Assembly: GCA_052426225.1 (NCBI GenBank)
Contig: JBNJNM010000013.1
Coordinates: 1,860,001-1,924,000 of the forward strand
DNA: 64,000 nt
From: Zancudomyces culisetae HAW-14-8
Lineage: Eukaryota > Fungi > Kickxellomycota
Direction: 5' to 3'
The translations under genes were made by a program, and so were the position numbers. The notes under the pieces were generated by a model. It was not told the DNA's origin. It searched no databases and was given only the letters and a program-made list of their open reading frames with translations. Every line of letters begins with the position of its first letter. Position 1 is the stretch's first letter. Of this stretch, positions 3,600-21,299 are shown one piece after another.

Positions 3600-6053
3600 T
3601 CAATAATTCGCAACGTTTTTGTCCAATAACAATTTGGAATTGGCAAGATCCAAGATGGTTTGTTCAACTGTAGAGTTGGCAATGAGTTTAAGTACAGTGA
3701 CAGGTTTGGATTGACCAACACGATGTGCTCTGTCCTCAGCTTGTTTGTCGTTGTGGGGGTTGAGGTCAATGTCATGGATGACAACAATGTTTGCGGTGGC
3801 CAAATTGATACCAAATCCACCAGCCTTTGTAGATAACAAAAAAATAGAAATGCCGTCACTAGAAGAGTTATTATTAAAAGAATCGATAAGCTGCTGACGC
3901 TCAGTGGTCTTTGTAGAGCCATCAAGGCGTACGTATAGATAATTCCATGACTTTAAAACAGTTTCGAGAATGTCAAGCATGGAAGTGAACTGGGAAAAGA
4001 TCAAGACTTTTTGGTTGAGGTCGCGGATGTTTGTGGATAAGATGGACTCAAGCTGGACTACTTTTGCAGAATCATAAAGGAGATGAGTAGGTAATTTGTA
4101 GGGCGCAAGTGACGAGTATTTGCGACAGTAATAATCTAATTCAAAGTCACTACACAGCTGCATATCTTGGTAAACGTATTCATAAATAGACTCTTTGTAA
4201 TCAGGTTCAGTTAAGATAAGAGAAGCCATTTTAGCCAGTTTGGAATCATCAAAGTGTGAGCGGACGAGTAGAGGATGATTTGCAATCTTACGTAGATTCA
4301 TCATTTTTGCAGTCCACGATTGAGATGTTTTAGCTTCATTACCATCTGCACTTGATGGAGAAAGTGCTAATACGTCTTCCTCTTTCTGTTTGTCAAACCC
4401 GTACATGTTGACGTGTTTCTCATACAAAGAGCGCTGGTATTCAGTCATTTCGACTTTGATTGTTTGCTGAGTTTTGGCTGGCAGGTCCTTCAGCACATCG
4501 CTTTTTCTTCGCCTTAATACAAACGGAGCTAGTAGCTTCTGCGCTTTTAAAATGTGTTTATGTTCAATCGGTAGTAGTGATTCAGGAACTGAACTCTCAA
4601 CTGTTGAGCCTTCGTCAAGCTGCACGTTTCCGCTCGAGTCATCCTTTTTTGTGGCACCTCCTTTGTTCTTAAATGCTAATTGTAGGGCACCAATACAGTC
4701 ATCAAATATCTTGGGCATAACAAACGCCAACAATGAAACGAGCTCCTGGAGGTTGTTTTGTAGTGGTGTGCCTGTTAGCAGCAATCTGAATGGCGCGCGG
4801 ATCTGCTGGAGGTAGCAGTACCTAACAGACGTGCAGTTTTTGACCATGTGTCCCTCATCTAGTATCATTGTTTTGAATGAAATTCGCCTCAACAGCGCCC
4901 TATCGGTTTTGTTGCTTGTTGCTACATTGTACGTACTTAGCAAGATGTCAAAATCAGCGCCGTACTTTTCGATTTTTAGCCCCATTCGTCGTCGCTCCAT
5001 CTGGTTTCCGTAATAGCTTCGCACCTTTAATGATGGCGAAAACTTTTTTATTTCCAATAACCAATTGTCTAGTGTCGAGGTTGGGCATATAATTAGATGT
5101 GGACCACTAATTCCTTGATCCTTCAGTCCTGTAAGAAATGATATCACTTGGAATGTCTTTCCTAGCCCCATTTCATCTGCAAGTATTCCTGAAGCCTTCG
5201 CTTTATACAGGCTGCCCAACCATGCCACGCCTTCCAGTTGAAATGGTTTCAAACTATACTCTGCATTCAGTGTTTCGCTCTGTTTTAGTTGTACTCCTGC
5301 TTTTAGTCCTTCATATTTCCCGCTGTCTTCATTTGTGTTTATCCCTTCATTTTCTAGTACGTCTTTTAGCCTTCTTGCTACCACAGAGCATTTTTCAATC
5401 ACATTGTCAATCTCTGCAAGCCCTATCACCATGTCATAATACTGTGTTACCACACTCACCCTTAGTCCTTTTGTTTTTCGTATAGTTTCTTCCAAAGCAT
5501 TGTAGTTACGAAATGGTCTGAGTTTCATTATTTCTTGTCTCTCATGTTCTGTGGCTATGGTTTGCATCACCAGCTCTTGTTCTGTTGCTTTGTTAAAAAA
5601 TTGCAGTGTAAGTTTGTCCGCGTCCACCAAGCTCTCTCTGGCTTTATACTCTCTGTCCGAATCCTCATCCTCTGACTCCTCTATGTATTGTTCTTTCCGG
5701 CCACTACCATTTTTGCTGTATTTATAACTATTGCCACCACCAGAGTTTTTATCGATATTTGTTCCAGTTGCCTGGCGTGATACGCCTTTCATGAGTTTTC
5801 GCCTCTTGTTCTCTATCCCATCGCCCCACTCCGTGCTCTGAGCTTTCTTCCCACTTTCCTCCATCAGACTTTTGCTCAGCCACCTTTCGCCATTTCCCTC
5901 CGCAGTTTCTCCTCCAGTATGTCTCTTTAATGGTGAAGATTCCAGTATTATTACGTTTCTATCACCCATTTCTTTACTTTCTTTCATTTCTATATATTCG
6001 TTTACACTTTCGGGTGTATTTGGTGCCAATACTTCTCTAGCTGCCACGCCCAT
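3600..6053 (-). CDS. FUN30: SNF2-family chromatin remodeler, Fun30/SMARCAD1 subfamily
   Basis: GILADEMGLGKT (motif I); LDEGHMVKN (DEGH variant typical of Fun30/SMARCAD1); LLTGTPLQNNL; KVLIFSQFTSMLDILE; LSTKAGGFGINL; NPHNDKQAEDRAHRVGQ. Confidence 0.9.
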   Translation of the reverse strand: MGVAAREVLAPNTPESVNEYIEMKESKEMGDRNVIILESSPLKRHTGGETAEGNGERWLSKSLMEESGKKAQSTEWGDGIENKRRKLMKGVSRQATGTNIDKNSGGGNSYKYSKNGSGRKEQYIEESEDEDSDREYKARESLVDADKLTLQFFNKATEQELVMQTIATEHERQEIMKLRPFRNYNALEETIRKTKGLRVSVVTQYYDMVIGLAEIDNVIEKCSVVARRLKDVLENEGINTNEDSGKYEGLKAGVQLKQSETLNAEYSLKPFQLEGVAWLGSLYKAKASGILADEMGLGKTFQVISFLTGLKDQGISGPHLIICPTSTLDNWLLEIKKFSPSLKVRSYYGNQMERRRMGLKIEKYGADFDILLSTYNVATSNKTDRALLRRISFKTMILDEGHMVKNCTSVRYCYLQQIRAPFRLLLTGTPLQNNLQELVSLLAFVMPKIFDDCIGALQLAFKNKGGATKKDDSSGNVQLDEGSTVESSVPESLLPIEHKHILKAQKLLAPFVLRRRKSDVLKDLPAKTQQTIKVEMTEYQRSLYEKHVNMYGFDKQKEEDVLALSPSSADGNEAKTSQSWTAKMMNLRKIANHPLLVRSHFDDSKLAKMASLILTEPDYKESIYEYVYQDMQLCSDFELDYYCRKYSSLAPYKLPTHLLYDSAKVVQLESILSTNIRDLNQKVLIFSQFTSMLDILETVLKSWNYLYVRLDGSTKTTERQQLIDSFNNNSSSDGISIFLLSTKAGGFGINLATANIVVIHDIDLNPHNDKQAEDRAHRVGQSKPVTVLKLIANSTVEQTILDLANSKLLLDKNVANY

Positions 6054-7937: not shown

Positions 7938-8674
7938 CGTGCCTACTTTCTTCCTATTTTATGGCGAATCTGTAACAAATACTTTATTGCACACGGAGGT
8001 ATTTACCGGAAATCTATTACAATTTGTTTTAAACTTCTTTTCACACTAAGTTCGAATCTTTCCTTTTAGATTAGTGATTTTTAATATGAGCTGATCAGAG
8101 TTGAAGTATTCAAGGATAACCAGAAATGAATCTTTACTATTTTGAAATAAAACCAGAAAATAAGTATTTGTAAATAATTGTCAACACTGATTAATAAGAG
8201 GTTTTTCCAAGTCATAAACTGCTGTGAAAAAAAATATTCAGGATTACGCCGCAAAACTACCAATTTTGGATAGTCTGTAATGAAAAAACCAAAAAGCTTT
8301 TCGTGGTACAAGAAATGTACATGTTTACAATCTCACATTGAAATGTCAGAGAATTCTGTATTATTCCGATAGGTTATTAGGCCAGGTATAACTCCATACA
8401 AAGCAAAAAGTTATAAATCTTTTCCAGCTTCCCTCGATACAGCCGTATCTCAAGCTAAAAGTTATATGTGCTAGTCTTCTCTTTATTGTTTGTTTCCTTA
8501 CAAAAATTCTACGACTATTGTTTACGTTTATAAGAGTAGTTTATATGAAAATTTAATAAAATATTGTGGTTTAAACATCCAGAATACTAGAGTAGTATGG
8601 GGATTTCACAAATTTAAATAGTGTGAGGTGACAAGTGTATGCCAGCAAATGTATGATTTAATTGGCACAACTAA

Positions 8675-10405
8675 CTATTGCACTGGACGTGATCCAAGGT
8701 TAGCGTATCTTCTACACGCAGTTCCACTTGTGGGAGCAGTTGGAGTTTCTATGGTAGGCTCCAATGCAGAAGTTGCTTCCTGTGTTTCTACTGGGATAGG
8801 AGCAGCCTCTGTAGCATCAGTGATTGGTGGTTGAACGGTGTTCGTATCAATAACCTCAGAAAATGTTGATATGGTAGGCATCAGTGCTGTAGGAGGTATT
8901 GCGGTGGTTACCTCAGGTGTTAGTAGTGGTAGTGGAGCGCTTGATATCGGTGCTGGTTCAGGGGCTGGGGATGGGGCTGGAGCTGGAGCTGGGGATAGTT
9001 CAGGAGCTGGAGCTGGGGATGGTTCAGGAGCTGGAGCTGGGGATGGTTCAGGAGCTGGGGCTGGAGCTGGAGCTGGGGATGGTTCAGGGGCTGGAGCTGG
9101 AGCTGGGGATGGTTCAGGAGCTGGAGCTGGGGATGGTTCAGGGGCTGGAGCTGGGGATGGGGCTGGAGCTGGAGCTGGGGATGGTTCAGGGGCTGGAGCT
9201 GGGGATGGTTCAGGAGCTGGAGCTGGGGATGGTTCAGGAGCTGGAGCTGGGGATGGTTCAGGAGCTGGAGCTGGGGATGGTTCAGGAGCTGGAGCTGGGG
9301 ATGGTTCAGGAGCTGGGGCTGGAGCTGGAGCTGGGGATGATTCAGGAGCTGGGGCTGGAGCTGGAGCTGGGGATGATTCAGGAGCTGGGGCTGGAGCTGG
9401 AGCTGGGGATGATTCAGGGGCTGGAGCTGGGGATGGTTCAGGAGCTGGAGCTGGGGATGGTTCAGGAGCTGGAGCTGGGGATGGGGCTGGGGATGATTCA
9501 GGGGCTGGAGCTGGAGCTGGGGATGGTTCAGGAGCTGGAGCTGGGGATGGTTCAGGAGCTGGAGCTGGGGATGGTGATGCAGCTGGGGATGGTGATGGTT
9601 GAGGAGCTGGGGATGGAGTTGGAGTTGGAGTTGGAGTTGGAGTTGGAGTTGGAGTTGGAGTTGGAGTTGGAGTTGGAGTTGGAGTTGGAGTTGGAGTTGG
9701 AGTTGGAGTTGGAGTTGGAGTTGGAGTTGGAACGATTGCAGATGACATTGGGGGTATAGCGATCGCAGATGACGTTGGAGCTCTTGAAGTTATTGGAGTT
9801 GGAGTTGGAGCTCTTGAAGTCAGTGGAGTTGGAGCTCTTGAAGTCAGTGGAGTTGGAGCCCTTGAAGTTATTGGAGTTGGAGTCCTTGAAGTCAGTGGAG
9901 TTGATGATACTGTTGGGACTTGAGGAATTGCGGATGATGTTGGTGGCCTTGAAGCTGGAGCGTTAGGTGCAACCACTGTTGTTACTGTGTTACTGTTTTT
10001 ATAATTGTATCTAATGGTTTGACACTGTAAAAATAGTGATATGGCTGGCAAATCGCTGACAAACATAGCCTCAGGATTTGAGTTGTTTCCAGCTCCATAC
10101 CTACCAGCTTCCTGTGTCAAAGTGTATGGTTTACTATCACAAAGTACTTGATAGGCGTTGTAGTTGGAAAAAATAGGAACACTCTGGTTTGTGGATCGAG
10201 CTCTTATGTTGTTAAGAGAATTTTGAATTGTGTTATAATTCACGATCAATGTATTGAATGGCACATCCTGAGTTGGAAATGATGAGTAACCTTCTGGTGC
10301 CCAAACGTACTGTTGCAGACCACCATTGGGCAAAGATGCCATCAGTATGGCCTTTGGATCATCAAATCCTGTATATGTGCTAACGGTACCACCTATTGTT
10401 GACAT
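8675..10405 (-). CDS. Unknown family member 1: ~145-aa N-terminal domain plus TSRAPTP, (PT)n and (EPSPAPAP)n Pro-rich stalk (576 aa)
   Basis: Long ORF with AAAAATG start context, a TATA upstream and clear paralogs in the window. Confidence 0.85.
8955..9730 (-). repeat. Coding tandem repeats: EPSPAPAP-type array (~8955-9600) and hexamer ggagtt x~19 encoding (PT)n (9615-9730)
   Basis: Repeat units visible directly. Confidence 0.95.
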
Positions 10406-10544
10406 TTTTTATTCTTGCTATAAAGTGCAACTCGGATGGGGATGATTATTGAAGATAAATTTAATAAGGATCTAAAGTAGGATTGTGTTATTAGAAGTAT
10501 ATATCTAATTGTGATGTATGAATATATCGAGGGAAAATGTCACT

Positions 10545-10554
10545 TATTTATATG
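10545..10554 (-). promoter_or_regulatory. Putative TATA box (CATATAAATA) of family member 1
   Basis: The same 10-mer sits at the equivalent position ~145 bp upstream of the paralog, where flanking identity has decayed. Confidence 0.6.
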
Positions 10555-13451
10555 TTCCGCTGGTGACTATGCTTTATAAAAATAGAAGAGAATCTTTTCT
10601 GATGTAGGCACACAACACTGTTTGTTAAACAACCAGATATTATGCCATAAAAGTAGTGTTTCAATATGTTGATTAATCTTGTTTTGCTTTTTTTCTTTTG
10701 ATTTGATTTGGCTTGTTCTTGTCTTTACTTTACTTACTCTCGATTTGGTTTTATTTAGTTTGATATTTTAATTAGTCCAGTACAAATTTTCTGTGTCCCA
10801 TGTTTCATTTGCTTTCTTCCATTTAGGCTATTGATGAGGTTTAAAGAATGATGTTCCTCCCCCAGATAAAAAACATCAACTCCTCGTCAAAATTTTGAAT
10901 CAAACGAAATCAATCAGCCAATACAATTATTGTGTTTTTGCTGAAATTCAAGGAGGCAGCTTTGCTTGGACATTCTTTTGTGTTGATACAGATTAAAGTG
11001 AGTTATTTTAAACCCTCCCCTTCCGTAACGGTTTAATCTAGAACCAAGACTATTGAGAAGAAGGCTATTACCACCTCCAAAATAATTTCTAGTGTGTTTA
11101 TGGTTTTTAAAGTACCCACTCGATTCCTATTTTTTTTAACTTGACTTATCATAAAGTACTCTGTTCTTTTCATTTCTGTTTTTACCATATGAGTTTCTTA
11201 CCTATTTAATAATTCTATTGTTTCAGAGAGAAAGAGCCCTTGATAAAGTGGATAATTCTTTATCCACATTATATTGAATTGGCTAAAATCAAAAACACAA
11301 TTACTTTTTTTCAAAAAAAAAAGAAAACCACTCTACCTATTTAGCAATAAGTGCGCAGAAGTTTAAATAACTATTTATATACGTACACATATATATATAT
11401 ATATATATGAAGCGTGAATTTTGACAGTCTGCTAATAAAAGTTGTACTAAAGATATAAGGCTAGACAAGCTTCTAAAGACATAGATATGCTTATACGTCT
11501 AAGCCCAATTAGGGTGTTAAGTATACACAGTATCAATGGCGTTTGCAAACACACTTTGTACTAGTGCACCTTTCCGATGTAGACAATTGATCTCAATATA
11601 AAACATATAAATGTATACTGTACTAAGTATGCCAAAACTTGTTAAATGGGCTTCATCTACTCCCGAGAAATTTCATATGAAGGGTTTTTGTATTTCACTT
11701 TAGCGAAAGTGTGACCCAAGAAGGCTGTGTATTCGCTATAATGAGCTATTTGTAGGTTGTTTACAATGGATTTGAAAATTTGCTTTGTGGGTAGTCCTAT
11801 TAAAGCCAGCTAATTTTTAGAGATTAAAGGTAAGTCTTAAGATAAAAATAAGATTCTCAAGAAGAAATGTTGGGGCTGATCATGCTTTTGTGTTTAGTGT
11901 GGAGTGTATTCTGGTCGAATCAATCAATATCTCACAACAGGCAAGTTTATTATTTACCTAGACTAGGTTAGTCAAGCAGTAGCCAGGATGAGAAGAGGGG
12001 ATGTGTGATTAAAAATAGAAAAAAAATACCTACACCATCTAAACTTGGTAGCATTTGACAATTAAAAACGAGAGATAGATTGTGGGTATCATCTACTCGA
12101 GCCAGTACAGGTATATGACCAATACATTTTATTTTTCTTGATATACTTGAGTATATTAATAAATACTGTGGATCCCGCCACCCCCCCCCTCCATATGGAA
12201 ATGTTGCAATACTCGGCTAATAGGTCTTTAATACCATGATTATCCGTCATATAGCTTTAATTTCATGTTATGCTGACCCGAATTTGAGTATGCATTCTAG
12301 CTAAGATGAAGATTATCCAAATTGCTCTGTCCGTCATACCATATGTCAGGCGTTAGCATGGCTCAACTTTTACCGCATTTTATCCTTTTCATTTTTGCGA
12401 TATGATGATAAAGATCAAGTAGCACAAACTGTAACTGGAATTAAATCTATTCACACAGTTAAAAGTACATCACCGAGAATTCTGCTTTAGTATATTTTGG
12501 CTTTTGAAAAAAAAGCCTAAAGCCGAGTTGCTTAATTTTACAATTATAAAAAGCGTACAGCTAACCTTGTGGTAAATATAGATACATTTTACTACATTCT
12601 CAAGCCAACATCCTTGAAAACGTAATTTTTACAAGCATATGTATGGAAATAGATGCTTGAATGTGTTTAAAATTGTAAAATTTGTACGTTTTTTACTCCT
12701 AAAAAAAAGAAGAGATTCTTGGGTAGGAACTACAATACCTGGATGTTCTACTCCTGAACCCACAAAGTGTTTTCCAAGCTGTTTTTTTTATTAAAAAAAA
12801 GATAATAATTGGTGATATGATACATACCGCCAACTTCCAGTCCAAGTTGATTTTCCAGCCCACTGATTGTTGGGATTAAATTAAAAAATATTACTTTTTT
12901 TTTTATAAACTTTTGTAGGGGTGTTAATAAAACAATACTATTAATATCAGGAACTATTTGGGGGGGAGGGGCTTATTCAGGAAAATGAAAGTCTACTTCT
13001 CAAAAATAAAGTACTTGATACACGAACTAAAGAGTACTTAATAACAAAGAGGGGAGGGCTAACTGGACCAGCCAACTCTAAAGTATTTACCGGTTATTGG
13101 AATAGATTTTTAGGTGAATAATTGTTGTTTTACATCACTAATTAGCGGGGTGCTGGGTTGAATACAAAGCCAAAGTTAATGGCAAGCTTTAATATTGAGC
13201 TCTACAAAAGTATTAAAAAATTATTAAAGATATGGAGAAATGTTTGGCTACTAATTGATGTATAAATTAGCAATACTTTTAAAGGAACCAATTATTCGAA
13301 AACGGTCTTTAACCAACATCTACATACTAATAGTGTATATGAAAATAATAACTTTACAACAAAACAAGATAACCCCCAAATCTAATAAGCAACAATAAAC
13401 TGACTAATTTGGGAAACTACCTTGAGCGTTGAACACACAGTTGATAAAAAT

Positions 13452-13461
13452 CATATAAATA
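13452..13461 (+). promoter_or_regulatory. Putative TATA box (CATATAAATA) of family member 2
   Basis: Conserved between the two palindrome arms. Confidence 0.6.
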
Positions 13462-13603
13462 TGTGTGACAATCTTCTCTAGATATATTCATACATCACAA
13501 TTAGATATATACTTCTAATAGCACAATCCTACTTTAGATCCTTATTAAATTTATCTTCAATAATCATCCCCATCCGAGTTGCACTTTATAGCAAGAATAA
13601 AAA

Positions 13604-14626
13604 ATGTCAACAATAGGTGGTACCGTTAGCACATATACAGGATTTGATGATCCAAGCGCCATACTGATGGCATCTTTGCCCAATGGTGGTCTGCAACAGT
13701 ACGTTTGGGCACCAGAAGGTTACTCATCATTTCCAACTCAGGATGTGCCATTCAATACATTAGTTGTGAATTATAACACAATTCAGGATACTCTTGATAA
13801 CATTAAAGTTCGATCCACTAATCAGACTATTCCTATTTTTTCTACTTACAATACCTATCAAGTACTTTGTGATAGTAAACCATACACTTTGACACAGGAA
13901 GCTGGTAGGTATGGAGCTGGAAACAACTCAAATCCTGAGGGCATGTTTGTCAGCGATTTGCCAGCCATATCACTATTTTTACAGTGTCAAACCATTAGAT
14001 ACAATTATAAAAACAGTAACACAGTAACAACAGTGGTTGCACCGAATGCTTCACCAATTTCGACGGTACCAGTATCATCAGCAGTTCCTATAACGTCAAC
14101 ATCGTCAGTAATCGCCATAATATCATCACCAGTCCCAGCTCCAGCCCCAGCCCCTGAACCATCTCCAGCTGCAGCTCCAGCTCCGTTACCAGCCCCAGTT
14201 GCGTTACCAGCCTCAGCCCCTGAACCATCTCCAGTTTCAGCTTCTGAACCAGCACCGATATCAAGCGCTCCACTACCACTACCAACACCTGAGGTAACCA
14301 CCGCAATACCTCCTACAGCACTGATGCCTACCATATCAACATTCTCTGAAGTCTCAGCTTCAGAAGAAGTTTTGGTAGCTAATGAAGTAGCTGAGAGTTC
14401 ACCAACAGTGGGTGTTCCAATAGTGATTGATTTCGTTGAAGATACCGGTGAACCAGTCACACTTACTGTTACAGAGGTCTCGCCTATATCAGTACAAACA
14501 CAAGACACAACTGTAGTGTTACAGCCAACTATAATAGCACCTATTATTCCGGTGTCACCGAACACGTCCACAAGTACAACTGAATGTGGAAAATACGCTA
14601 ACCTTGGATCACGTCCAGTGCAATAG
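13604..14626 (+). CDS. Unknown family member 2: same N-terminal domain with shorter Pro/Ser/Thr/Glu stalk (340 aa)
   Basis: N-terminal 147 aa nearly identical to 8675-10405; same C-terminal [10 protein letters not shown]. Confidence 0.85.
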   Translation: MSTIGGTVSTYTGFDDPSAILMASLPNGGLQQYVWAPEGYSSFPTQDVPFNTLVVNYNTIQDTLDNIKVRSTNQTIPIFSTYNTYQVLCDSKPYTLTQEAGRYGAGNNSNPEGMFVSDLPAISLFLQCQTIRYNYKNSNTVTTVVAPNASPISTVPVSSAVPITSTSSVIAIISSPVPAPAPAPEPSPAAAPAPLPAPVALPASAPEPSPVSASEPAPISSAPLPLPTPEVTTAIPPTALMPTISTFSEVSASEEVLVANEVAESSPTVGVPIVIDFVEDTGEPVTLTVTEVSPISVQTQDTTVVLQPTIIAPIIPVSPNTSTSTTECGKYANLGSRPVQ

Positions 14627-15065
14627 TTAGTTGTGCCAATTAAATCATACATTTGCTGGCATACACTTGTCACCTCACACTATTTAAATTTGTGAAATCC
14701 CCATACTACTCTAGTATTCTGGATGTTTAAACCACAATATTTTATTAAATTTTCATATAAACTACTCTTATAAACGTAAACAATAGTCGTAGAATTTTTG
14801 TAAGGAAACAAACAATAAAGAGAAGACTAGCACATATAACTTTTAGCTTGAGATACGGCTGTATCGAGGGAAGCTGGAAAAGATTTATAACTTTTTGCTT
14901 TGTATGGAGTTATACCTGGCCTAATAAATTATTATAAAAGCAACTTGTATTTAGAAAAATAAATATTAAACTACCAACTGATAAGTCAGAAATCATAATA
15001 AACTATAAATGAATACTTAAAACAAAACAATGATAAAATTTTTTTACACAAGGTCACATCACAAA

Positions 15066-17003
15066 TCAAGTTTGGCTTCTGCGGGTCTTGGAAGATCGGT
15101 TTCTCTTTGTCTTTGTCTTTGTGTTGGTTTTCTTTTTTCCACGAGAGTTAGAAATATTGATAGATCGAGGAGTAACTGTTTTAACTGTTACTTCTGTTAC
15201 AGTATAAGTCTTAATGGTAGTAGTTGTTGTTGTAACGGAAGTTGTTGTAAGCGTAGTTGTGGTGCTTGTGGAAGATAAAGATGTAGGTAGAACAGTTCCA
15301 GTTATAGTTCCAGTCTCACTAGCTGCTGTAGTTGTGGTTACCAAAACTGATGATGTTGGCGATACCGCAGATGCCAATGTTGTTGATAACACTGATGATA
15401 CCGGAGATGATAGCAATGTTGACGTTGGTATTGATAATGTTGATGGTGTTGACGATGTTGACGATGTTGACGATGTTGATGGTGTTGATGGTGTTGATGG
15501 TGTTGATGGTGTTGATGGTGTTGATGGTGTTGACGATGTTGATGTTGATGATGATATTGATGATGTTGACGTCAAATCAAGTGTATTGATATCTGCATTT
15601 GGGAAAACAAACGTTGTATCAATGTTTCCAAAAGTATATACATAAGTTAGCGTTTGACACTCTAGTAGTTGTGAAATAGTAGGAAGATCTTCTACAAAGT
15701 AGCTTTCCGCATTTATATTTTCTACTGTTCCATATCTTCCCAACTCTTGAGATATTTGACGGTTTGTCCCATCACATGTTATTTGGTACTCGTATGTGTT
15801 TGAGAATATGACTTGAGTAGAGTTGTTAGCTCGAAGTTGAATACTGTCGAAAGTGTCTTGAATAGTGTTATAGTTTACAATACCTACATCAAAGATAAGC
15901 TGCTGGCTGGGTATTGCAGTATAGCCGTTTGGAGCCCAGTTGTATTGAGGTTGACCATTAGTATCTAGGCTGGATACTAGTACTGCATTCGGATTGCCGA
16001 AACCGGAATACATATTGAGAATTCCTCCAACAGGAGAAGAACTGGGTGTTGCAGTTGCAGTTGTAGTTGTAGTGGCGGTTGCAGTTGCAGTTGTAGTTGT
16101 ACTGGCGGTTGTAGTAGCGGCTGTAATAGTAGTTGTTGTAAGCGTAGTTGTGGTGCTTGTGGAAGATAAAGATGTAGGTAGAACAGTTCCAGTTATAGTT
16201 CCAGTCTCACTAGCTGCTATAGTTGTGGTTACCAAAACTGATGATGTTGGCGATACCGCAGATGCCAATGTTGTTGATAACACTGATGATACCGGAGATG
16301 ATAGCAATGTTGACGTTGGTATTGATAATGTTGATGGTGTTGACGATGTTGACGATGTTGATGATGTTAATGATGTTAATGATGTTGATGTTATTGATGT
16401 TAATGATGTTGATGTTATTGATGTTAATGATGTTGATGTTATTGATGATGATATTGATGATGATAGCAATGTCGACAATGACGATGTTGATGTTGATGAT
16501 GTTGATGTTGATGGTGTTGATGATGTTGACGTCAAATCAAGTGTATTGATATCTGCATTTGGGAAAACAAACGTTGTATCAATGTTTCCAAAAGTATATA
16601 CATAAGTTAGCGTTTGACACTCTAGTAGTTGTGAAATAGTAGGAAGATCTTCTACAAAGTAGCTTTCCGCATTTATATTTTCTACTGTTCCATATCTTCC
16701 CAACTCTTGAGATATTTGACGGTTTGTCCCATCACATGTTATTTGGTACTCGTATGTGTTTGAGAATATGACTTGAGTAGAGTTGTTAGCTCGAAGTTGA
16801 ATACTGTCGAAAGTGTCTTGAATAGTGTTATAGTTTACAATACCTACATCAAAGATAAGCTGCTGGCTGGGTATTGCAGTATAGCCGTTTGGAGCCCAGT
16901 TGTATTGAGGTTGACCATTAGTATCTAGGCTGGATACTAGTACTGCATTCGGATTACTAAATCCTGTGTATGCATTTACTATCCCACCTACTATACCTGA
17001 CAT
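15066..17003 (-). CDS. Unknown family member 3: two copies of the domain, each with a Ser/Thr stalk, and a basic C-terminal tail (645 aa)
   Basis: Shares the GG.V..YTGF, QY.WAP.GY, VNYNTIQ, YQ..CD, QE.GRYG, FV.DLP.IS..L.CQT and PNA motifs. A CTAAC branch site (17034-17030) and AG (17017-17016) suggest an intron just upstream of the ATG. Confidence 0.85.
   Translation of the reverse strand: MSGIVGGIVNAYTGFSNPNAVLVSSLDTNGQPQYNWAPNGYTAIPSQQLIFDVGIVNYNTIQDTFDSIQLRANNSTQVIFSNTYEYQITCDGTNRQISQELGRYGTVENINAESYFVEDLPTISQLLECQTLTYVYTFGNIDTTFVFPNADINTLDLTSTSSTPSTSTSSTSTSSLSTLLSSSISSSITSTSLTSITSTSLTSITSTSLTSLTSSTSSTSSTPSTLSIPTSTLLSSPVSSVLSTTLASAVSPTSSVLVTTTIAASETGTITGTVLPTSLSSTSTTTTLTTTTITAATTTASTTTTATATATTTTTATATPSSSPVGGILNMYSGFGNPNAVLVSSLDTNGQPQYNWAPNGYTAIPSQQLIFDVGIVNYNTIQDTFDSIQLRANNSTQVIFSNTYEYQITCDGTNRQISQELGRYGTVENINAESYFVEDLPTISQLLECQTLTYVYTFGNIDTTFVFPNADINTLDLTSTSSISSSTSTSSTPSTPSTPSTPSTPSTPSTSSTSSTSSTPSTLSIPTSTLLSSPVSSVLSTTLASAVSPTSSVLVTTTTAASETGTITGTVLPTSLSSTSTTTTLTTTSVTTTTTTIKTYTVTEVTVKTVTPRSINISNSRGKKKTNTKTKTKRNRSSKTRRSQT
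15241..16955. repeat. Intragenic direct duplication (15557-15995 = 16517-16955; 15241-15470 ~ 16132-16361)
   Basis: By eye the ~440-bp block is identical at offset 960, and the second block at offset 891 shows one mismatch. Confidence 0.95.
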
Positions 17004-17938
17004 AATTTTGTACCTCTATATTATATTTGGTTAGTTATTTTCAACTAAGTGCTGTTTGATATATTAAGATGAGTTCAATATATATTTCTTTATGGACTTA
17101 TACACGTTTTCTGATTTTTCACCTTTTATGTTGTAGTTTTTTTTATTCGCTATTTACTGATCCACTCATTGGGTAAATGTATTTTTATTTAAACACCCCC
17201 CACTCTCATTAACTTTTGCCCTTTTTTATACTTTGTTCACTAAATCGTAAACCTTGCATTTTATTGCTGGTTTTTGTCTTTAAATAGCCACCATTTTTAT
17301 CTTTAAGACATGGTTAATTTATTTCGTAATAACGGATGGCTCAAAACTTATCCTTTAGTAATTAGTTGGTAAACTTTCGTTGAGTATTTGAGCATGTTTT
17401 AACAATTTAAATGGTAGCTATGTTGCCTTTTCCCTGCGCTAGCGCATAAAAACGACATTTGATAATATCATCCAGCTTATTTTCTGTTAAACTTTAACTA
17501 ATAGCAATCAGACTAAAATAACAACGTCCACATCTGCACCCCCTAATCCGTCTAAATTCTTTTTTGCCATACTCACTTCTCTTTAACTCTGCAATTCCAA
17601 ACGCCCTTATTCTCAACATGAGCACATATGTTTTTTATTTCATGTTTGTTTGGACATCAAAGTCATCGTTGTGATATGTTGTTATTGAGGTTTTAAAGTC
17701 TCAAATTTTTACAGGGATATACTGAAGTTTTCTCATTATGAGCACATGCCAACATTGGCAGCGCCTTACAACATTTTTACACATCCATTTTTTGTAATTA
17801 CCTCTCGAATCCTGCTATTATGTAATTTCATTTTCTTTCAAATCTAGAGCTATTATTATTCAGATAAATTGGGCTATAACCTACTAATTAGCAGCTCTAC
17901 TTATTTTTTGGAGGGTGATAAAACATAAAACGCCAAAA

Positions 17939-19043
17939 ATGGGAACAAAGATTGGAAACCTTTTCAGATCGCGACTTCTCGATCTTTTGCACATTGTGGT
18001 ACTTATCGGATTTGTCTTTTTGGTGAAGGAATTAGTTCCCCAAAGGAAACGACTGTTTTTTTTGTCAGACCAAACGATTTCCTTTCCTCATACGAATCCG
18101 GAAGAGCAATTGTTTCCTGAATCTGTGATGGTTTTTTTGGCCTTTATTTTTCCACTATCAGTTATCTTTGCTGTTTCATTCTTTAACGGCAACAGAAACA
18201 TCGCAATCGACGGGGCTATAGGTAATTGTGCAATTCCTCGATTTCTTTAAACGAATTAACATGTTCTCGTATTAAAATAGCTCTAGTGTTTGTACATTTA
18301 TATAACCAATTCTTTACTGAAATTCCGAAGGTAAAGGCCCCTATTTTTGTCTTATTTTATGCTAATTGATACGACTTTCTTTACTCAAAAATCACTAACA
18401 TTTCTCAACATTTATTAGAGGATAGTGGGGAGACAGAGGCCAGATTTTCTTTCGAGATGCTTCTATGGGAATAAAGATAAAATTCCTCAGGAGGACCACA
18501 AGTTGCATAACGACTTTGTATGTACAAACAACAATAAGTCAATGATAAACGAAGGATACAAAAGCTTTCCTTCTGGGCATTCTTCTGGTAAGCCTACGCT
18601 TGGCACTTATTTGTGTGTTACTTAAAATCATGCTAAGTATAATTGTGTCTGTATTGTATTTAGTCGCATTTTCTGGAATGGTTTTTTTGTCATTGTTTTT
18701 GTCATTCCATTTTGGAGCCAGGATTCTAAAGGGTACCACTTACAAGATGACGATTATATTGTTTCCAATTCTCATCGCAATTATTGTTGCAACCTCAAGG
18801 ACAATAGACTACTGGCACCACTCTGGGGACGTGCTAGCTGGATCAGTAATTGGGATTTGTATGGGAATTTATGGATATAAATATCATTATTATTCGTTGA
18901 GAATTGAAGAAGCAAAAGACTTTTCTGATGATGCACCTCCTGGCAACATCAACCAACATCATCAAGGCTATGAAGAGCTTTTGGATGAGAGTAGTGAACT
19001 CAGAGACCTTAGCAATAGCGCAAGCGTCATAAATATGCACTAG
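17939..19043 (+). CDS. PAP2-family lipid phosphate phosphatase, Dpp1/Lpp1-like (exons 17939-18221, 18281-18330, 18419-18587, 18664-19043)
   Basis: The spliced product restores the three PAP2 motifs: KRIVGRQRP (KX6RP), SFPSGHSS and [12 protein letters not shown] (SRX5HX3D). Hydrophobic segments and GT-AG introns. Confidence 0.92.
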
Positions 19044-20135: not shown

Positions 20136-21299
20136 ATGAGTGAAGGTATGAAAAAAGAAAAGAGAAAGCCGGCAGGGTTGAAATCCTCCGCTGAAAAAAG
20201 AGCAAAGGTGGATGATAATGTAAGGATGGTTCGCGACTTTGAAGATGAAAGAACAGCGACCGTTGTGTTAAAAAATGTCGAAGGGGAGAACGTGAATGAA
20301 GTCGACGAGATTGAAGAGATCTACAATAATGCATTGGAGGAAGTGGAGGACGATAAAGAAAAGGCCGTAATGTTATTGAGTGGGACAGTTCATGAATGCA
20401 ATCGAATAATCCAGACAAACGATGGTGCAAAAGACAAGCAACCTCTTCCATATAAACTATACTATTTATATGGAATAAGTCTATTTGATCTTAGCGAGCT
20501 TGATGAACCAGAAGACGCTCTCGAATATCTGAAGCTCAGTTTGGAAAGGCTTTCTCAGGCCAAAGATATACACGAAACACAGATGTGTGAAGAAAAGGAT
20601 ACAAGAATCTATGTTGGATTGGGAAAAGTAAATTTAAGCATTGCCAGAAAAGCTGAGAAGGAAAAGGATGTTATTGAATCTTTGAACTCTTCTCTGATGT
20701 ACTTTAAAACTGCTTTTGATGCGCTCGAAGCCAAGATATCACGCTTAAAAAGCAACGAAGAGCAGAAAAAGGAGTATACAACTGAGATATACAATATCAT
20801 CGATCTTCTGTTATTGTACTGTGAAAATAATCCTATCTTTGAAGCGATTGAATGTTGTTCCGAATTTATCACACAAAAACTGGAGGAATTGAAAAAAACT
20901 ACCAACACATATGAGCCACATTTTTTTTCTGCGCAGCTTCAATGGTGTTTGGCATTGTATTACCTAAATTTGCTAGATCAATCTGCCACAGACGATGACA
21001 AGGATGAAGGCCACGATGAACATCAACGTCTAGCGTTGGAGAAGCTTGAAATGGCCGAAAAGCACTTGAATAGCTGTGTAAAAAGCGCTGCCGACCCCGC
21101 CTCCTTGCCTCGTGAAACGTATATTATGTTTGGTGAAGTTTTGTTGAATAAGGGGAATTTGCTTTCTGACTCTGGAAATACAGAAGAAGAACAATACAGG
21201 CTTGCTGCGAAAAAATTCAAAATGGCCATAGATATTTCGGCAGGCGACACTGATGGTCTGCCTGAATACGTTTTGGAGTTCGTTGAGGAATGGTTGTGA
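20136..21299 (+). CDS. ETT1: Ett1/Nro1-like protein (enhancer of translation termination / negative regulator of Ofd1)
   Basis: N-terminal KRKPAGLK and LLSGTVHECNRII resemble the Ett1/Nro1 KRPLGL and GVIHECDRLL motifs; helical-repeat acidic body. Confidence 0.7.
   Translation: MSEGMKKEKRKPAGLKSSAEKRAKVDDNVRMVRDFEDERTATVVLKNVEGENVNEVDEIEEIYNNALEEVEDDKEKAVMLLSGTVHECNRIIQTNDGAKDKQPLPYKLYYLYGISLFDLSELDEPEDALEYLKLSLERLSQAKDIHETQMCEEKDTRIYVGLGKVNLSIARKAEKEKDVIESLNSSLMYFKTAFDALEAKISRLKSNEEQKKEYTTEIYNIIDLLLLYCENNPIFEAIECCSEFITQKLEELKKTTNTYEPHFFSAQLQWCLALYYLNLLDQSATDDDKDEGHDEHQRLALEKLEMAEKHLNSCVKSAADPASLPRETYIMFGEVLLNKGNLLSDSGNTEEEQYRLAAKKFKMAIDISAGDTDGLPEYVLEFVEEWL

Follow-up and report, generated by a model that had tools for sequence, protein, structure and literature searches.

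We found a family of three intronless genes, encoding four copies of a head domain of approximately 148 to 150 aa, in Zancudomyces culisetae HAW-14-8, within a window of 64,000 nucleotides that is the whole stretch of DNA analyzed. By sequence searches this three-gene family has so far been found in Zancudomyces only, and on present evidence it remains an uncharacterized orphan. It is species restricted, under selection, and variable in copy number, and it combines an adhesin-like architecture with a lack of export signals, which would mean either that an early-diverging fungus exports a wall protein by an unconventional route or that these proteins represent a novel kind of intracellular tether. 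The domain itself, of approximately 148 aa, is well delimited, with boundaries that are clear and four naturally occurring sequences, and is explained neither by the databases searched nor by structure prediction.

Gene cluster and head domain

The initial annotation had placed four copies of the domain in three clustered genes, and the coordinates and ORFs were as it claimed. The features of the cluster are as follows.

8675-10405, minus strand: gene 1 (g1), 576 aa, head at aa 1-150 (ORF list)
13604-14626, plus strand: gene 2 (g2), 340 aa; head, short Pro/Ala/Ser/Val stalk, C-terminal module
15066-17003, minus strand: gene 3 (g3), 645 aa; head, Ser/Thr stalk, head, Ser/Thr stalk, polybasic tail
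9956-10405, minus strand: head copy 1 (g1), from the alignment; E 4e-89 against the family profile
13604-14053, plus strand: head copy 2 (g2), from the alignment and family profile
16551-17003, minus strand: head copy 3 (g3a), aa 1-151 of g3, from the alignment and family profile
15585-16034, minus strand: head copy 4 (g3b), internal, about aa 324-474 of g3, from the alignment and family profile
17016-17105, minus strand: putative 5'UTR intron of gene 3, 90 nt; GTGTATAAGT ... TAACTAAC ... ATAG
10406-10560, minus strand: promoter and 5' leader of gene 1, approximately 155 nt homologous to those of gene 2
13449-13603, plus strand: promoter and 5' leader of gene 2, a mirror copy of those of gene 1
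8369-8733, no strand: outer inverted-repeat arm, gene 1 3' end plus 306 nt downstream
14568-14932, no strand: partner arm, gene 2 3' end plus downstream sequence
10539-13470, no strand: unique spacer of 2.9 kb between the divergent genes 1 and 2

Alignment of the four heads gave 68 invariant columns. The g1 and g2 heads were 88% identical to one another, and each was 45 to 46% identical to the g3 heads. The motifs listed initially (GG-x4-Y(T/S)GF-x2-P, QYxWAPxGY, VNYNTIQ, IFS-x4-YQxxCD, QExGRYG, FVxDLPxISxxLxCQT, and PNA) were found in all four copies, as were the two Cys residues described as invariant, C89 and C128. The invariant Asn73 opened an N-x-S/T sequon in four of four heads. Each copy matched the family profile with an E value of about 1e-89, a likeness far beyond chance. 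Compact and strongly constrained, the head started right at the initiator Met in each gene. Because the internal copy, g3b, begins with ...PVGG immediately after a Thr/Ala linker, the domain start can be placed approximately 2 to 5 residues before the GG and is the same in internal and N-terminal copies. Charged residues made up 10 to 11% of the heads (4% K+E) and N/S/T/Y/Q/G 49 to 50%, a composition outside the range from the 5th to the 95th percentile for windows of 150 aa, although the argument is statistical and its reference is ten neighboring proteins only, membrane proteins among them. Spurious long ORFs from low-complexity DNA were also seen on both strands of this region (for example, 8838-9602 and 15994-16605, both numbered on the plus strand).

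Stalks, tails, and predicted lack of export signals

Each head had initially been assigned a different linker, and the amino acid composition agreed with a head carried on variable low-complexity stalks. Their length was 190 to 426 aa and varied among paralogs and between strains. The g1 stalk was made up of P (37%), A (19%), S (12%), T (12%), and E (7%), with P+A+S+T+E at 87%, and the order of this protein was head, Thr/Ser/Pro segment, (PT)n, an array of the (PAPAPEPS) type of approximately 250 aa, and a unique C-terminal module of approximately 90 aa that was common to genes 1 and 2 only. The g2 stalk was a mixture of P/S/V/A/T, and that of g3 was dominated by T (34%) and S (28%; S+T 62%). 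Judged by composition, the stalks are mucin-like or linker-like; they are fast-evolving spacers. Near the C-termini of g1 and g2, a Cys adjoined Arg-Arg or Gly-Lys, while the g3 tail was polybasic (11 K/R among the last 25 residues) and might just as well serve as an NLS or bind membranes.

The three products are predicted to be leaderless, with no ER signal, transmembrane (TM) segment, or GPI signal, and hydropathy values upheld the initial annotation on each of these points. The maximum 8-residue Kyte-Doolittle (KD) hydropathy in the first 38 aa was 1.9 to 2.0, the maximum KD19 was 1.25 to 1.57 with no TM-grade segment, and hydropathy averaged over the 20 C-terminal residues was -0.65, -0.78, and -2.54, the tails being polar or basic.

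Possible roles of the cluster proteins

By analogy, we tentatively favor the reading that these proteins have a structural role at the surface, in a wall or spore layer, and are exported without a leader, as is Isp3 of Schizosaccharomyces pombe. Taken together, the head composition, the Asn73 sequon, the two Cys residues, and the mucin-like or linker-like stalks appear to be of an extracellular type. As surface proteins, they would leave the cytoplasm leaderless, in the manner of Isp3. Their head would then attach to a polymer of the wall or to itself, with the stiff or glycosylatable stalk as a spacer, and the other end would be held by the basic or Cys tail, either ionically to acidic wall polymers or by a thiol or acyl link. 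Against such a role, GC3 was 27 to 33% in the cluster genes versus 45 to 48% in HSP70, ICL, and HMGR, and these low values do not suggest highly expressed structural genes. The self-assembly and the spore-wall or extrusion-apparatus role put forward initially are speculative.

The spore coat protein Isp3 lacks a signal sequence and retains its N-terminus; it undergoes palmitoylation and assembles with itself over chitosan at the surface of the spore (PMC4019487). It thereby offers a mechanism whereby a leaderless protein can become extracellular. Isp3 and the cluster proteins are alike in being lineage-restricted fungal proteins without a signal sequence. Isp3 nevertheless ends as a surface layer, with a Cys-dependent lipid modification (PMC4019487). 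The likeness proposed here is a functional one only. Isp3 is a small protein and, to our knowledge, has no long stalk. Like the cluster proteins, the Als/Flo/Epa adhesins begin with a globular head, which is carried on a Ser/Thr/Pro-rich repeat stalk that varies in length; they also share with them clustered paralogs and repeat and copy variation driven by recombination. However, the signal peptide at the N-terminus and the GPI signal at the C-terminus of these adhesins are absent from the cluster proteins, and the cluster heads match none of the adhesins' Pfam domain families; known adhesin domains (PA14/GLEYA, Als Ig-like, and Flo11) gave no Pfam match even at E values up to 10. The cytoplasmic fungal lectins (ricin-B/beta-trefoil, galectin, and actinoporin-like fruit-body proteins) resemble the cluster heads in being leaderless domains of approximately 150 aa rich in aromatics, Asn, and Gly. 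They carry no stalk that we know of, and the cluster heads differ from them in lacking a lectin Pfam match and in having two predicted helices (in models with a pLDDT of 41 to 42).

Among the gut symbionts of larval mosquitoes, black flies, and midges, Z. culisetae is the model species, and our search of the literature found nothing molecular on its holdfast or on the wall and appendage of its spores. If true, the surface-layer reading would provide a first handle on the attachment and persistence of Harpellales in mosquito guts and the first molecular component known for trichospore coat or appendage or for holdfast material. The fully specified proposal, that a globular domain born in the Zancudomyces lineage, or diverged beyond recognition there, forms a leaderless, nonclassically exported surface layer of the fungus, with these structures as candidates, is unlikely to be correct in all its parts.

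The main alternative, which we consider possible but doubtful, is that the proteins are intracellular tethers or scaffolds, cytoplasmic or nuclear, whose head has an organelle or a complex as its partner or binds to itself. The Pro- or Ser/Thr-rich region would then be an entropic or rigid spacer, of which the Woronin-body tether leashin is an example, and the polybasic tail of g3 or the Cys/Arg tails of g1 and g2 would bind acidic membranes, be S-acylated, or act as an NLS. Such a location is consistent with the lack of a signal peptide, TM, or GPI signal in three of three genes, with the polybasic C-terminus of g3 and the Cys beside Arg-Arg or Gly-Lys in g1 and g2, and with the ordinary GC3 of the cluster genes. 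It fits less well with the head, whose composition (4% K+E and 50% N/S/T/Y/Q/G) is not what soluble cytosolic domains among the neighboring proteins typically show and whose sequon is conserved, or with stalks that contain 62% Ser+Thr and (PT)n arrays, which are typical of secretory-pathway proteins. A species-restricted, copy-variable family would also be unusual for a core cell-biological tether.

Upstream sequence and start codons

It is improbable that these genes encode conventional adhesins, secreted and anchored in the wall, with a signal-peptide exon that has been overlooked. The in-frame TAA reported ahead of genes 1 and 2 was located at -6 to -4 before each ATG. An upstream intron had also been suggested for gene 3, and a plausible 90-nt intron (17016-17105, GTGTAT...ACTAAC...TAG) does lie there, but it opens no N-terminal extension: the upstream frame contains stops and no Met, whether spliced or unspliced, so the putative intron adds no coding sequence. 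Homology upstream of g1 and g2 ended approximately 155 nt before the ATG, at a TATA box (CATATAAATA, at about -150 in the gene 1 promoter). That 155-nt leader was without an ATG in gene 1, and the sole ATG of the gene 2 leader, at -143 in the TATA box region, was missing in gene 1. Between the paralog groups, ATG-TCA was kept despite otherwise unrelated upstream DNA, and the start codons chosen here agree with those annotated in GenBank for strain COL-18-3.

Both a strict scan and a permissive GT/AG enumeration were carried out for an upstream signal-peptide exon, and neither gave a credible candidate; the permissive enumeration yielded chance-type candidates only, with long introns and none consistent between genes. 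Signal-like mini-ORFs of this kind did occur upstream, one of them at 11867-11971 on the plus strand, 1.7 kb before gene 2. However, all of them would require introns of between 270 nt and approximately 2 kb, as well as acceptors inside the conserved head, and none is common to genes 1 and 2, where homology ends so close to the ATG. A GPI-type C-terminus, expected of a wall-anchored adhesin, is also lacking. The in-frame stops before every ATG, the conserved ATG-TCA, the shared leader of approximately 155 nt without a common ATG, and the internal copy in g3 together argue that there is no upstream coding extension.

Searches for relatives and fold predictions

The domain had been put forward as unrecognized, and our searches were in accord with this, giving no above-threshold Pfam match, no PDB sequence match, and relatives from the same species only. 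A profile built from the family and searched against 1.84 billion (1.84e9) representative proteins, like a word-based protein search, returned only OMH82652.1 and OMH82651.1, the counterparts of these genes in another strain of Z. culisetae. In its own 27-Mb genome, the profile found the four copies and no further one. No match was obtained in the metagenome, prokaryote, and viral contigs scanned, an ESM Atlas feature search with both paralog groups gave no usable match, and the family was absent from the syntenic Fun30-Nro1 interval of Smittium culicis. Orphans of this kind are common in poorly sampled fungal lineages. The housekeeping neighbor Nro1/Ett1 was 35% identical to its ortholog in Smittium culicis, the only other taxon matched in the Nro1/Ett1 search. 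With whole proteins and isolated heads, Pfam gave only subthreshold matches, to PNPOx_N (g3) and EntA_Immun (E 0.87). The sole NCBIfam match, to seadornavirus VP2 (E 0.05), and a match of the family profile to TubR among PDB sequences (E 1.2) were both taken as chance.

AlphaFold2 was run twice, with 4-row and 6-row alignments and different query copies, and gave pLDDT values of 41.3 and 41.8. Both of these low-pLDDT models had the same mixed order, b-b-(b)-a-b-b-a-b-b, in which the two helices are amphipathic. The beta-rich, lectin-like head proposed initially was therefore not borne out, as both models, unreliable as they are, were mixed alpha+beta, and no lectin family was matched. When the second model, which is too poor to interpret (pLDDT 41 to 42), was compared with the PDB by Foldseek, nothing was found at E values up to 0.001, and the best TM-score was 0.25.

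That the head is a very divergent FMN-binding split barrel (PNPOx-like), and hence a cytosolic small-molecule-binding module, has little probability. PNPOx_N (PF01243) showed a weak local likeness to the first approximately 85 residues of both g3 heads (E 0.016 and 0.032; 15 to 16 bits; profile positions 9-80), a P-x-A-x-L/V-x-S/T-x-D-x-x-G-Q-P motif resembled residues 47-64 of E. coli PdxH, and the strand/helix order predicted in the models with a pLDDT of 41 to 42 was compatible with such a fold. However, the bit score per head is below the Pfam gathering threshold of 28.1 bits, the 24.4 bits (4e-5) of the whole g3 protein are the mere sum of two near-identical copies, and the g1 and g2 heads had no match. 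An hhalign comparison with E. coli PdxH, a weak test with a single-sequence target, aligned 18 columns with a probability of 1.3%, the PDB search with the family profile returned no PNPOx chain, and PF01243 had no match genome-wide in this genome at E values up to 0.1. A PNPOx_N identity, subthreshold, confined to g3, and reduced by hhalign to an 18-residue motif, was therefore rejected. With the failure of this only lead in the profile check, the initial statement that the head lacks a significant match to a characterized domain held.

Selection, duplication, and strain variation

For the g1 and g2 heads, dN/dS was 0.30 at a dS of 0.13, and for g3a and g3b it was 0.15 at a dS of 0.11, which points to a real and not very recent duplication. 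Between the paralog groups dS was saturated and dN was 0.46, yet 68 columns were invariant. All three ORFs were intact in both Z. culisetae strains, with OMH82651.1 as the gene 2 ortholog. These values indicate that the heads are under purifying selection and that the genes are real coding genes. Although low-complexity DNA here yields long spurious ORFs on both strands, the dN/dS values of 0.15 to 0.30, the positions invariant despite saturated dS, and the intact ORFs already refute, as far as sequence can show, the notion of chance ORFs or decaying, nonfunctional duplicates in a repeat-rich region.

The arm at 8369-8733 was 98% complementary to that at 14568-14932. The spacer at 10539-13470 contained no ORF of at least 60 aa and had no Rfam match; it was single copy in the genome and is not a repeat or transposon. 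The same residue pair was found in g1 and g2 within a strain, D16/A36 in both genes of one strain and N16/S36 in both genes of the other, which is a sign of gene conversion between them. Genes 1 and 2 arose by inverted whole-gene duplication, with arm-to-arm gene conversion. Direct repeats D2/D3 lie inside gene 3 at a spacing of 891 to 960 nt, and further growth of the cluster came from stalk repeat expansion and a doubling of head plus stalk within this gene. The stalk differed by a 6-nt indel between strains, and g3 had two heads here and one in the other Z. culisetae assembly. Gene conversion, stalk indels, and variation in head number are typical of the dynamics of surface genes.

Anatomy and selection of the head-on-stalk genes

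The family comprises three intronless, clustered genes:

8675-10405, minus strand: g1, ORF of 576 aa
13604-14626, plus strand: g2, ORF of 340 aa
15066-17003, minus strand: g3, ORF of 645 aa

The long ORFs seen on the opposite strands result from the repeats. A ~150-aa segment (the head) opens each of the three proteins and is repeated in g3 at about aa 324-474, and alignment of the four copies (g1, g2, and g3a and g3b, the N-terminal and internal copies of g3) gave 68 invariant columns with no internal gaps. The g1 and g2 heads were 88% identical to each other and 45-46% identical to the g3 copies. All motifs named in the initial annotation were found in this alignment, both Cys residues that it had called invariant were so across the four heads, and Asn73 was likewise invariant, with an N-x-S/T sequon starting there in all four. 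Charged residues made up 10-11% of the heads, Lys plus Glu only 4%, and Asn, Ser, Thr, Tyr, Gln, and Gly 49-50%, a composition beyond the 5th and 95th percentiles of 150-aa windows from ten neighbouring proteins.

The low-complexity stalk behind the head differed in composition from protein to protein, as had also been described. That of g1 was Pro/Ala-rich (37% Pro, 19% Ala, 12% Ser, 12% Thr, and 7% Glu) and contained a (PT)n run and a ~250-aa array of the PAPAPEPS type, that of g2 was a short mix of Pro/Ser/Val/Ala/Thr, and that of g3 was Thr/Ser (34% Thr and 28% Ser). A ~90-aa C-terminal module was common to g1 and g2 and found nowhere else in the genome.

Nei-Gojobori estimates for the heads gave a dN/dS of 0.30 for g1-g2 (dS 0.13) and 0.15 for g3a-g3b (dS 0.11); between the paralogue groups dS was saturated and dN was 0.45-0.48. 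These dN/dS values of 0.15-0.30, together with ORFs that were all intact in both Z. culisetae strains, HAW-14-8 and COL-18-3, rule out chance ORFs or decaying duplicates. The orphan domain family is genuine and well delimited, and its leaderless head-on-stalk architecture is unusual.

Evolution of the cluster

Genes g1 and g2 are a whole gene unit duplicated in inverted orientation. The inverted arms at 9956-10538 and 13471-14053 were 95% complementary, those at 8369-8733 and 14568-14932 were 98% complementary, and a unique 2.9-kb spacer separates g1 from g2. At residues 16 and 36, both genes encode D16/A36 in HAW-14-8 and N16/S36 in COL-18-3. Variants of this kind, strain specific yet common to g1 and g2, are a hallmark of gene conversion between these arms, and the comparison indicates a short tract of conversion at the arms' 5' end within the palindrome. 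The strain differences in g2 cluster within ~100 nt of the CDS start (window 13604-13770 versus 4103-4270 of L005, the COL-18-3 contig), and in that 5' stretch g2 of each strain matches g1 of the same strain.

Gene g3 arose when a ~0.9-kb head-plus-stalk unit was doubled, and the dS of 0.11 between its two heads excludes both an assembly artefact and a very recent event. The g3 of COL-18-3 is, in the short-read assembly of that strain, a 302-aa ORF with one head (L005:5570-6478, minus strand; LSSK01000620.1), owing either to collapse during assembly or to a genuine one-head allele from unequal recombination. This head resembles g3a, from which it has one synonymous difference, and is fused to a g3b-type stalk. 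Between the two strains, dS was about 0.01-0.03 in the cluster genes. A counterpart of the cluster was found in GCA_001969505.1, where the same three genes adjoin the same Nro1-like gene. The PacBio-HiFi assembly of HAW-14-8 is reported as 27.2 Mb in 26 contigs (PMC12611240), and the same paper names BioProject PRJNA1254182 for the transcriptome of this strain.

Distribution of the family

The initial annotation had recognised no Pfam family for the head, and this held: neither the whole proteins nor the isolated heads gave an accepted Pfam match above threshold. No NCBIfam model matched the family, its profile found no relative among PDB sequences, an ESM Atlas feature search with both paralogue groups found none, and a word-index protein search found none outside Z. 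culisetae. A HMMER profile search, which had been proposed as a check, returned from 1.84 billion representatives one cluster only, that of the Z. culisetae proteins OMH82652.1 (partial) and OMH82651.1. Metagenome, prokaryotic-genome, and viral contigs, scanned by pattern and tblastn, yielded no relative, and the genome itself (27.1 Mb, 25 contigs) contained these four head copies only. At the available resolution, these searches indicate that the family is lineage restricted. Orphan families are common in poorly sampled lineages.

Nro1/Ett1 orthologues from Smittium culicis were present in the protein collection, and since they are only 35% identical to the Z. culisetae protein, the nearest sampled relative is distant enough for a fast-evolving family to have diverged past detection. 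In Z. culisetae, Fun30 (3600-6053) and Nro1/Ett1 (20136-21299) lie head to head and flank the cluster at a distance of 14 kb from each other. Their S. culicis counterparts lie tail to tail, 2 kb apart, on two contigs (L010 and L011) in which hmmsearch and tblastn found no family member. The orientation thus differs between the genera, so that an inversion or insertion accompanies the cluster.

Possible functions

We infer function here, as distinct from the observed anatomy, selection, evolutionary dynamics, and lack of relatives. The skewed head composition, conserved sequon, two invariant Cys residues, and mucin-like or linker-like stalks, together with paralogue clustering, copy and repeat variation, and gene conversion, conform to what is usual for surface proteins of fungi. 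Classical adhesins, however, are defined by export signals, which were looked for in g1, g2, and g3 and were absent. [quoted passage not shown] Because of the surface-like traits without export signals and the Isp3 precedent, we rank first, as a tentative choice, the reading that these products are leaderless structural proteins of a surface or spore layer. The initial annotation was confirmed in what it observed and partly supported in how it interpreted it.

Ranked close behind, and likewise tentative, is a tether in the cytosol or nucleus that would bind membranes or nucleic acids through its basic or Cys tail. The C-terminal module of g1 and g2 closes with a tail beginning C-(R/G)-(R/K), and g3 ends in a polybasic tail; the surface-like traits listed led us to place the surface or spore-layer reading ahead of it.

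Predicted fold of the head

Two AlphaFold2 runs gave pLDDT values of 41.3 and 41.8, at which a Foldseek search is uninformative. Both models contained the following elements:

head residues about 20-37: two strands
head residues 57-73: helix
head residues 77-103: long hairpin
head residues 112-127: helix
head residues 130-148: final hairpin

The sequence of both predicted helices has amphipathic i/i+3/i+4/i+7 hydrophobic spacing. With low confidence, the models and this spacing favour an alpha+beta domain over the beta-rich, lectin-like fold proposed initially. PNPOx_N, the one lead at family level, was rejected: each g3 head scored 15-16 bits, under the 28.1-bit threshold, g1 and g2 gave no match, and in hhalign the similarity to Escherichia coli PdxH shrank to an 18-residue motif (probability 1.3%). 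That the head is a divergent split-barrel ligand-binding domain is a minor option and very improbable.

N termini and upstream sequence

The N termini (MSTIGG... and MSGIVGG...) are not hydrophobic, and hydropathy revealed no transmembrane-grade segment or hydrophobic C terminus in the three proteins, in agreement with the earlier report of no leader, transmembrane helix, or GPI signal. The in-frame TAA reported just upstream of the g1 and g2 ATG was seen at -6 to -4. Homology upstream of these genes stops ~155 nt from the ATG, just past a common CATATAAATA box, and in the leader that they share g1 has no ATG and g2 has a single one, inside the TATA region. The in-frame TAA, this homology limit, and the lack of a common ATG therefore exclude a common upstream coding exon. 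In g3, a convincing 90-nt leader intron with an ACTAAC branch site is predicted at 17016-17105, and the upstream frame, spliced or unspliced, has stops and no Met. ATG-TCA is kept between the paralogue groups, the DNA further upstream being otherwise unalignable, and the internal g3 copy starts where the N-terminal copies start.

A missed signal exon, which would supply a conventional leader and was named initially as the finding that would overturn the leaderless reading, is a minor and very unlikely option. Permissive enumeration of all GT...AG joins did offer candidates, but with introns of 270 nt to ~2 kb and acceptors within the conserved head, and none was common to different genes; this and the upstream frames left no credible exon. 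The upstream sequences argue strongly, if not finally, that the proteins lack a signal peptide.

Two further ORFs were noted. One of 34 codons in mid-spacer between g1 and g2 (11867-11971, plus strand; MLGLIMLLCLVWSVFWSNQS...) is signal-peptide-like, and the CAG|GCAAGT that comes after it could be a GC-AG donor. This ORF does not fit as an exon of g2 and may be due to chance or represent exon 1 of a small gene missing from the annotation. The other, between g3 and Nro1 (17915-18250, plus strand), has a hydrophobic segment, and a 128-aa gene is called there in the other assembly.
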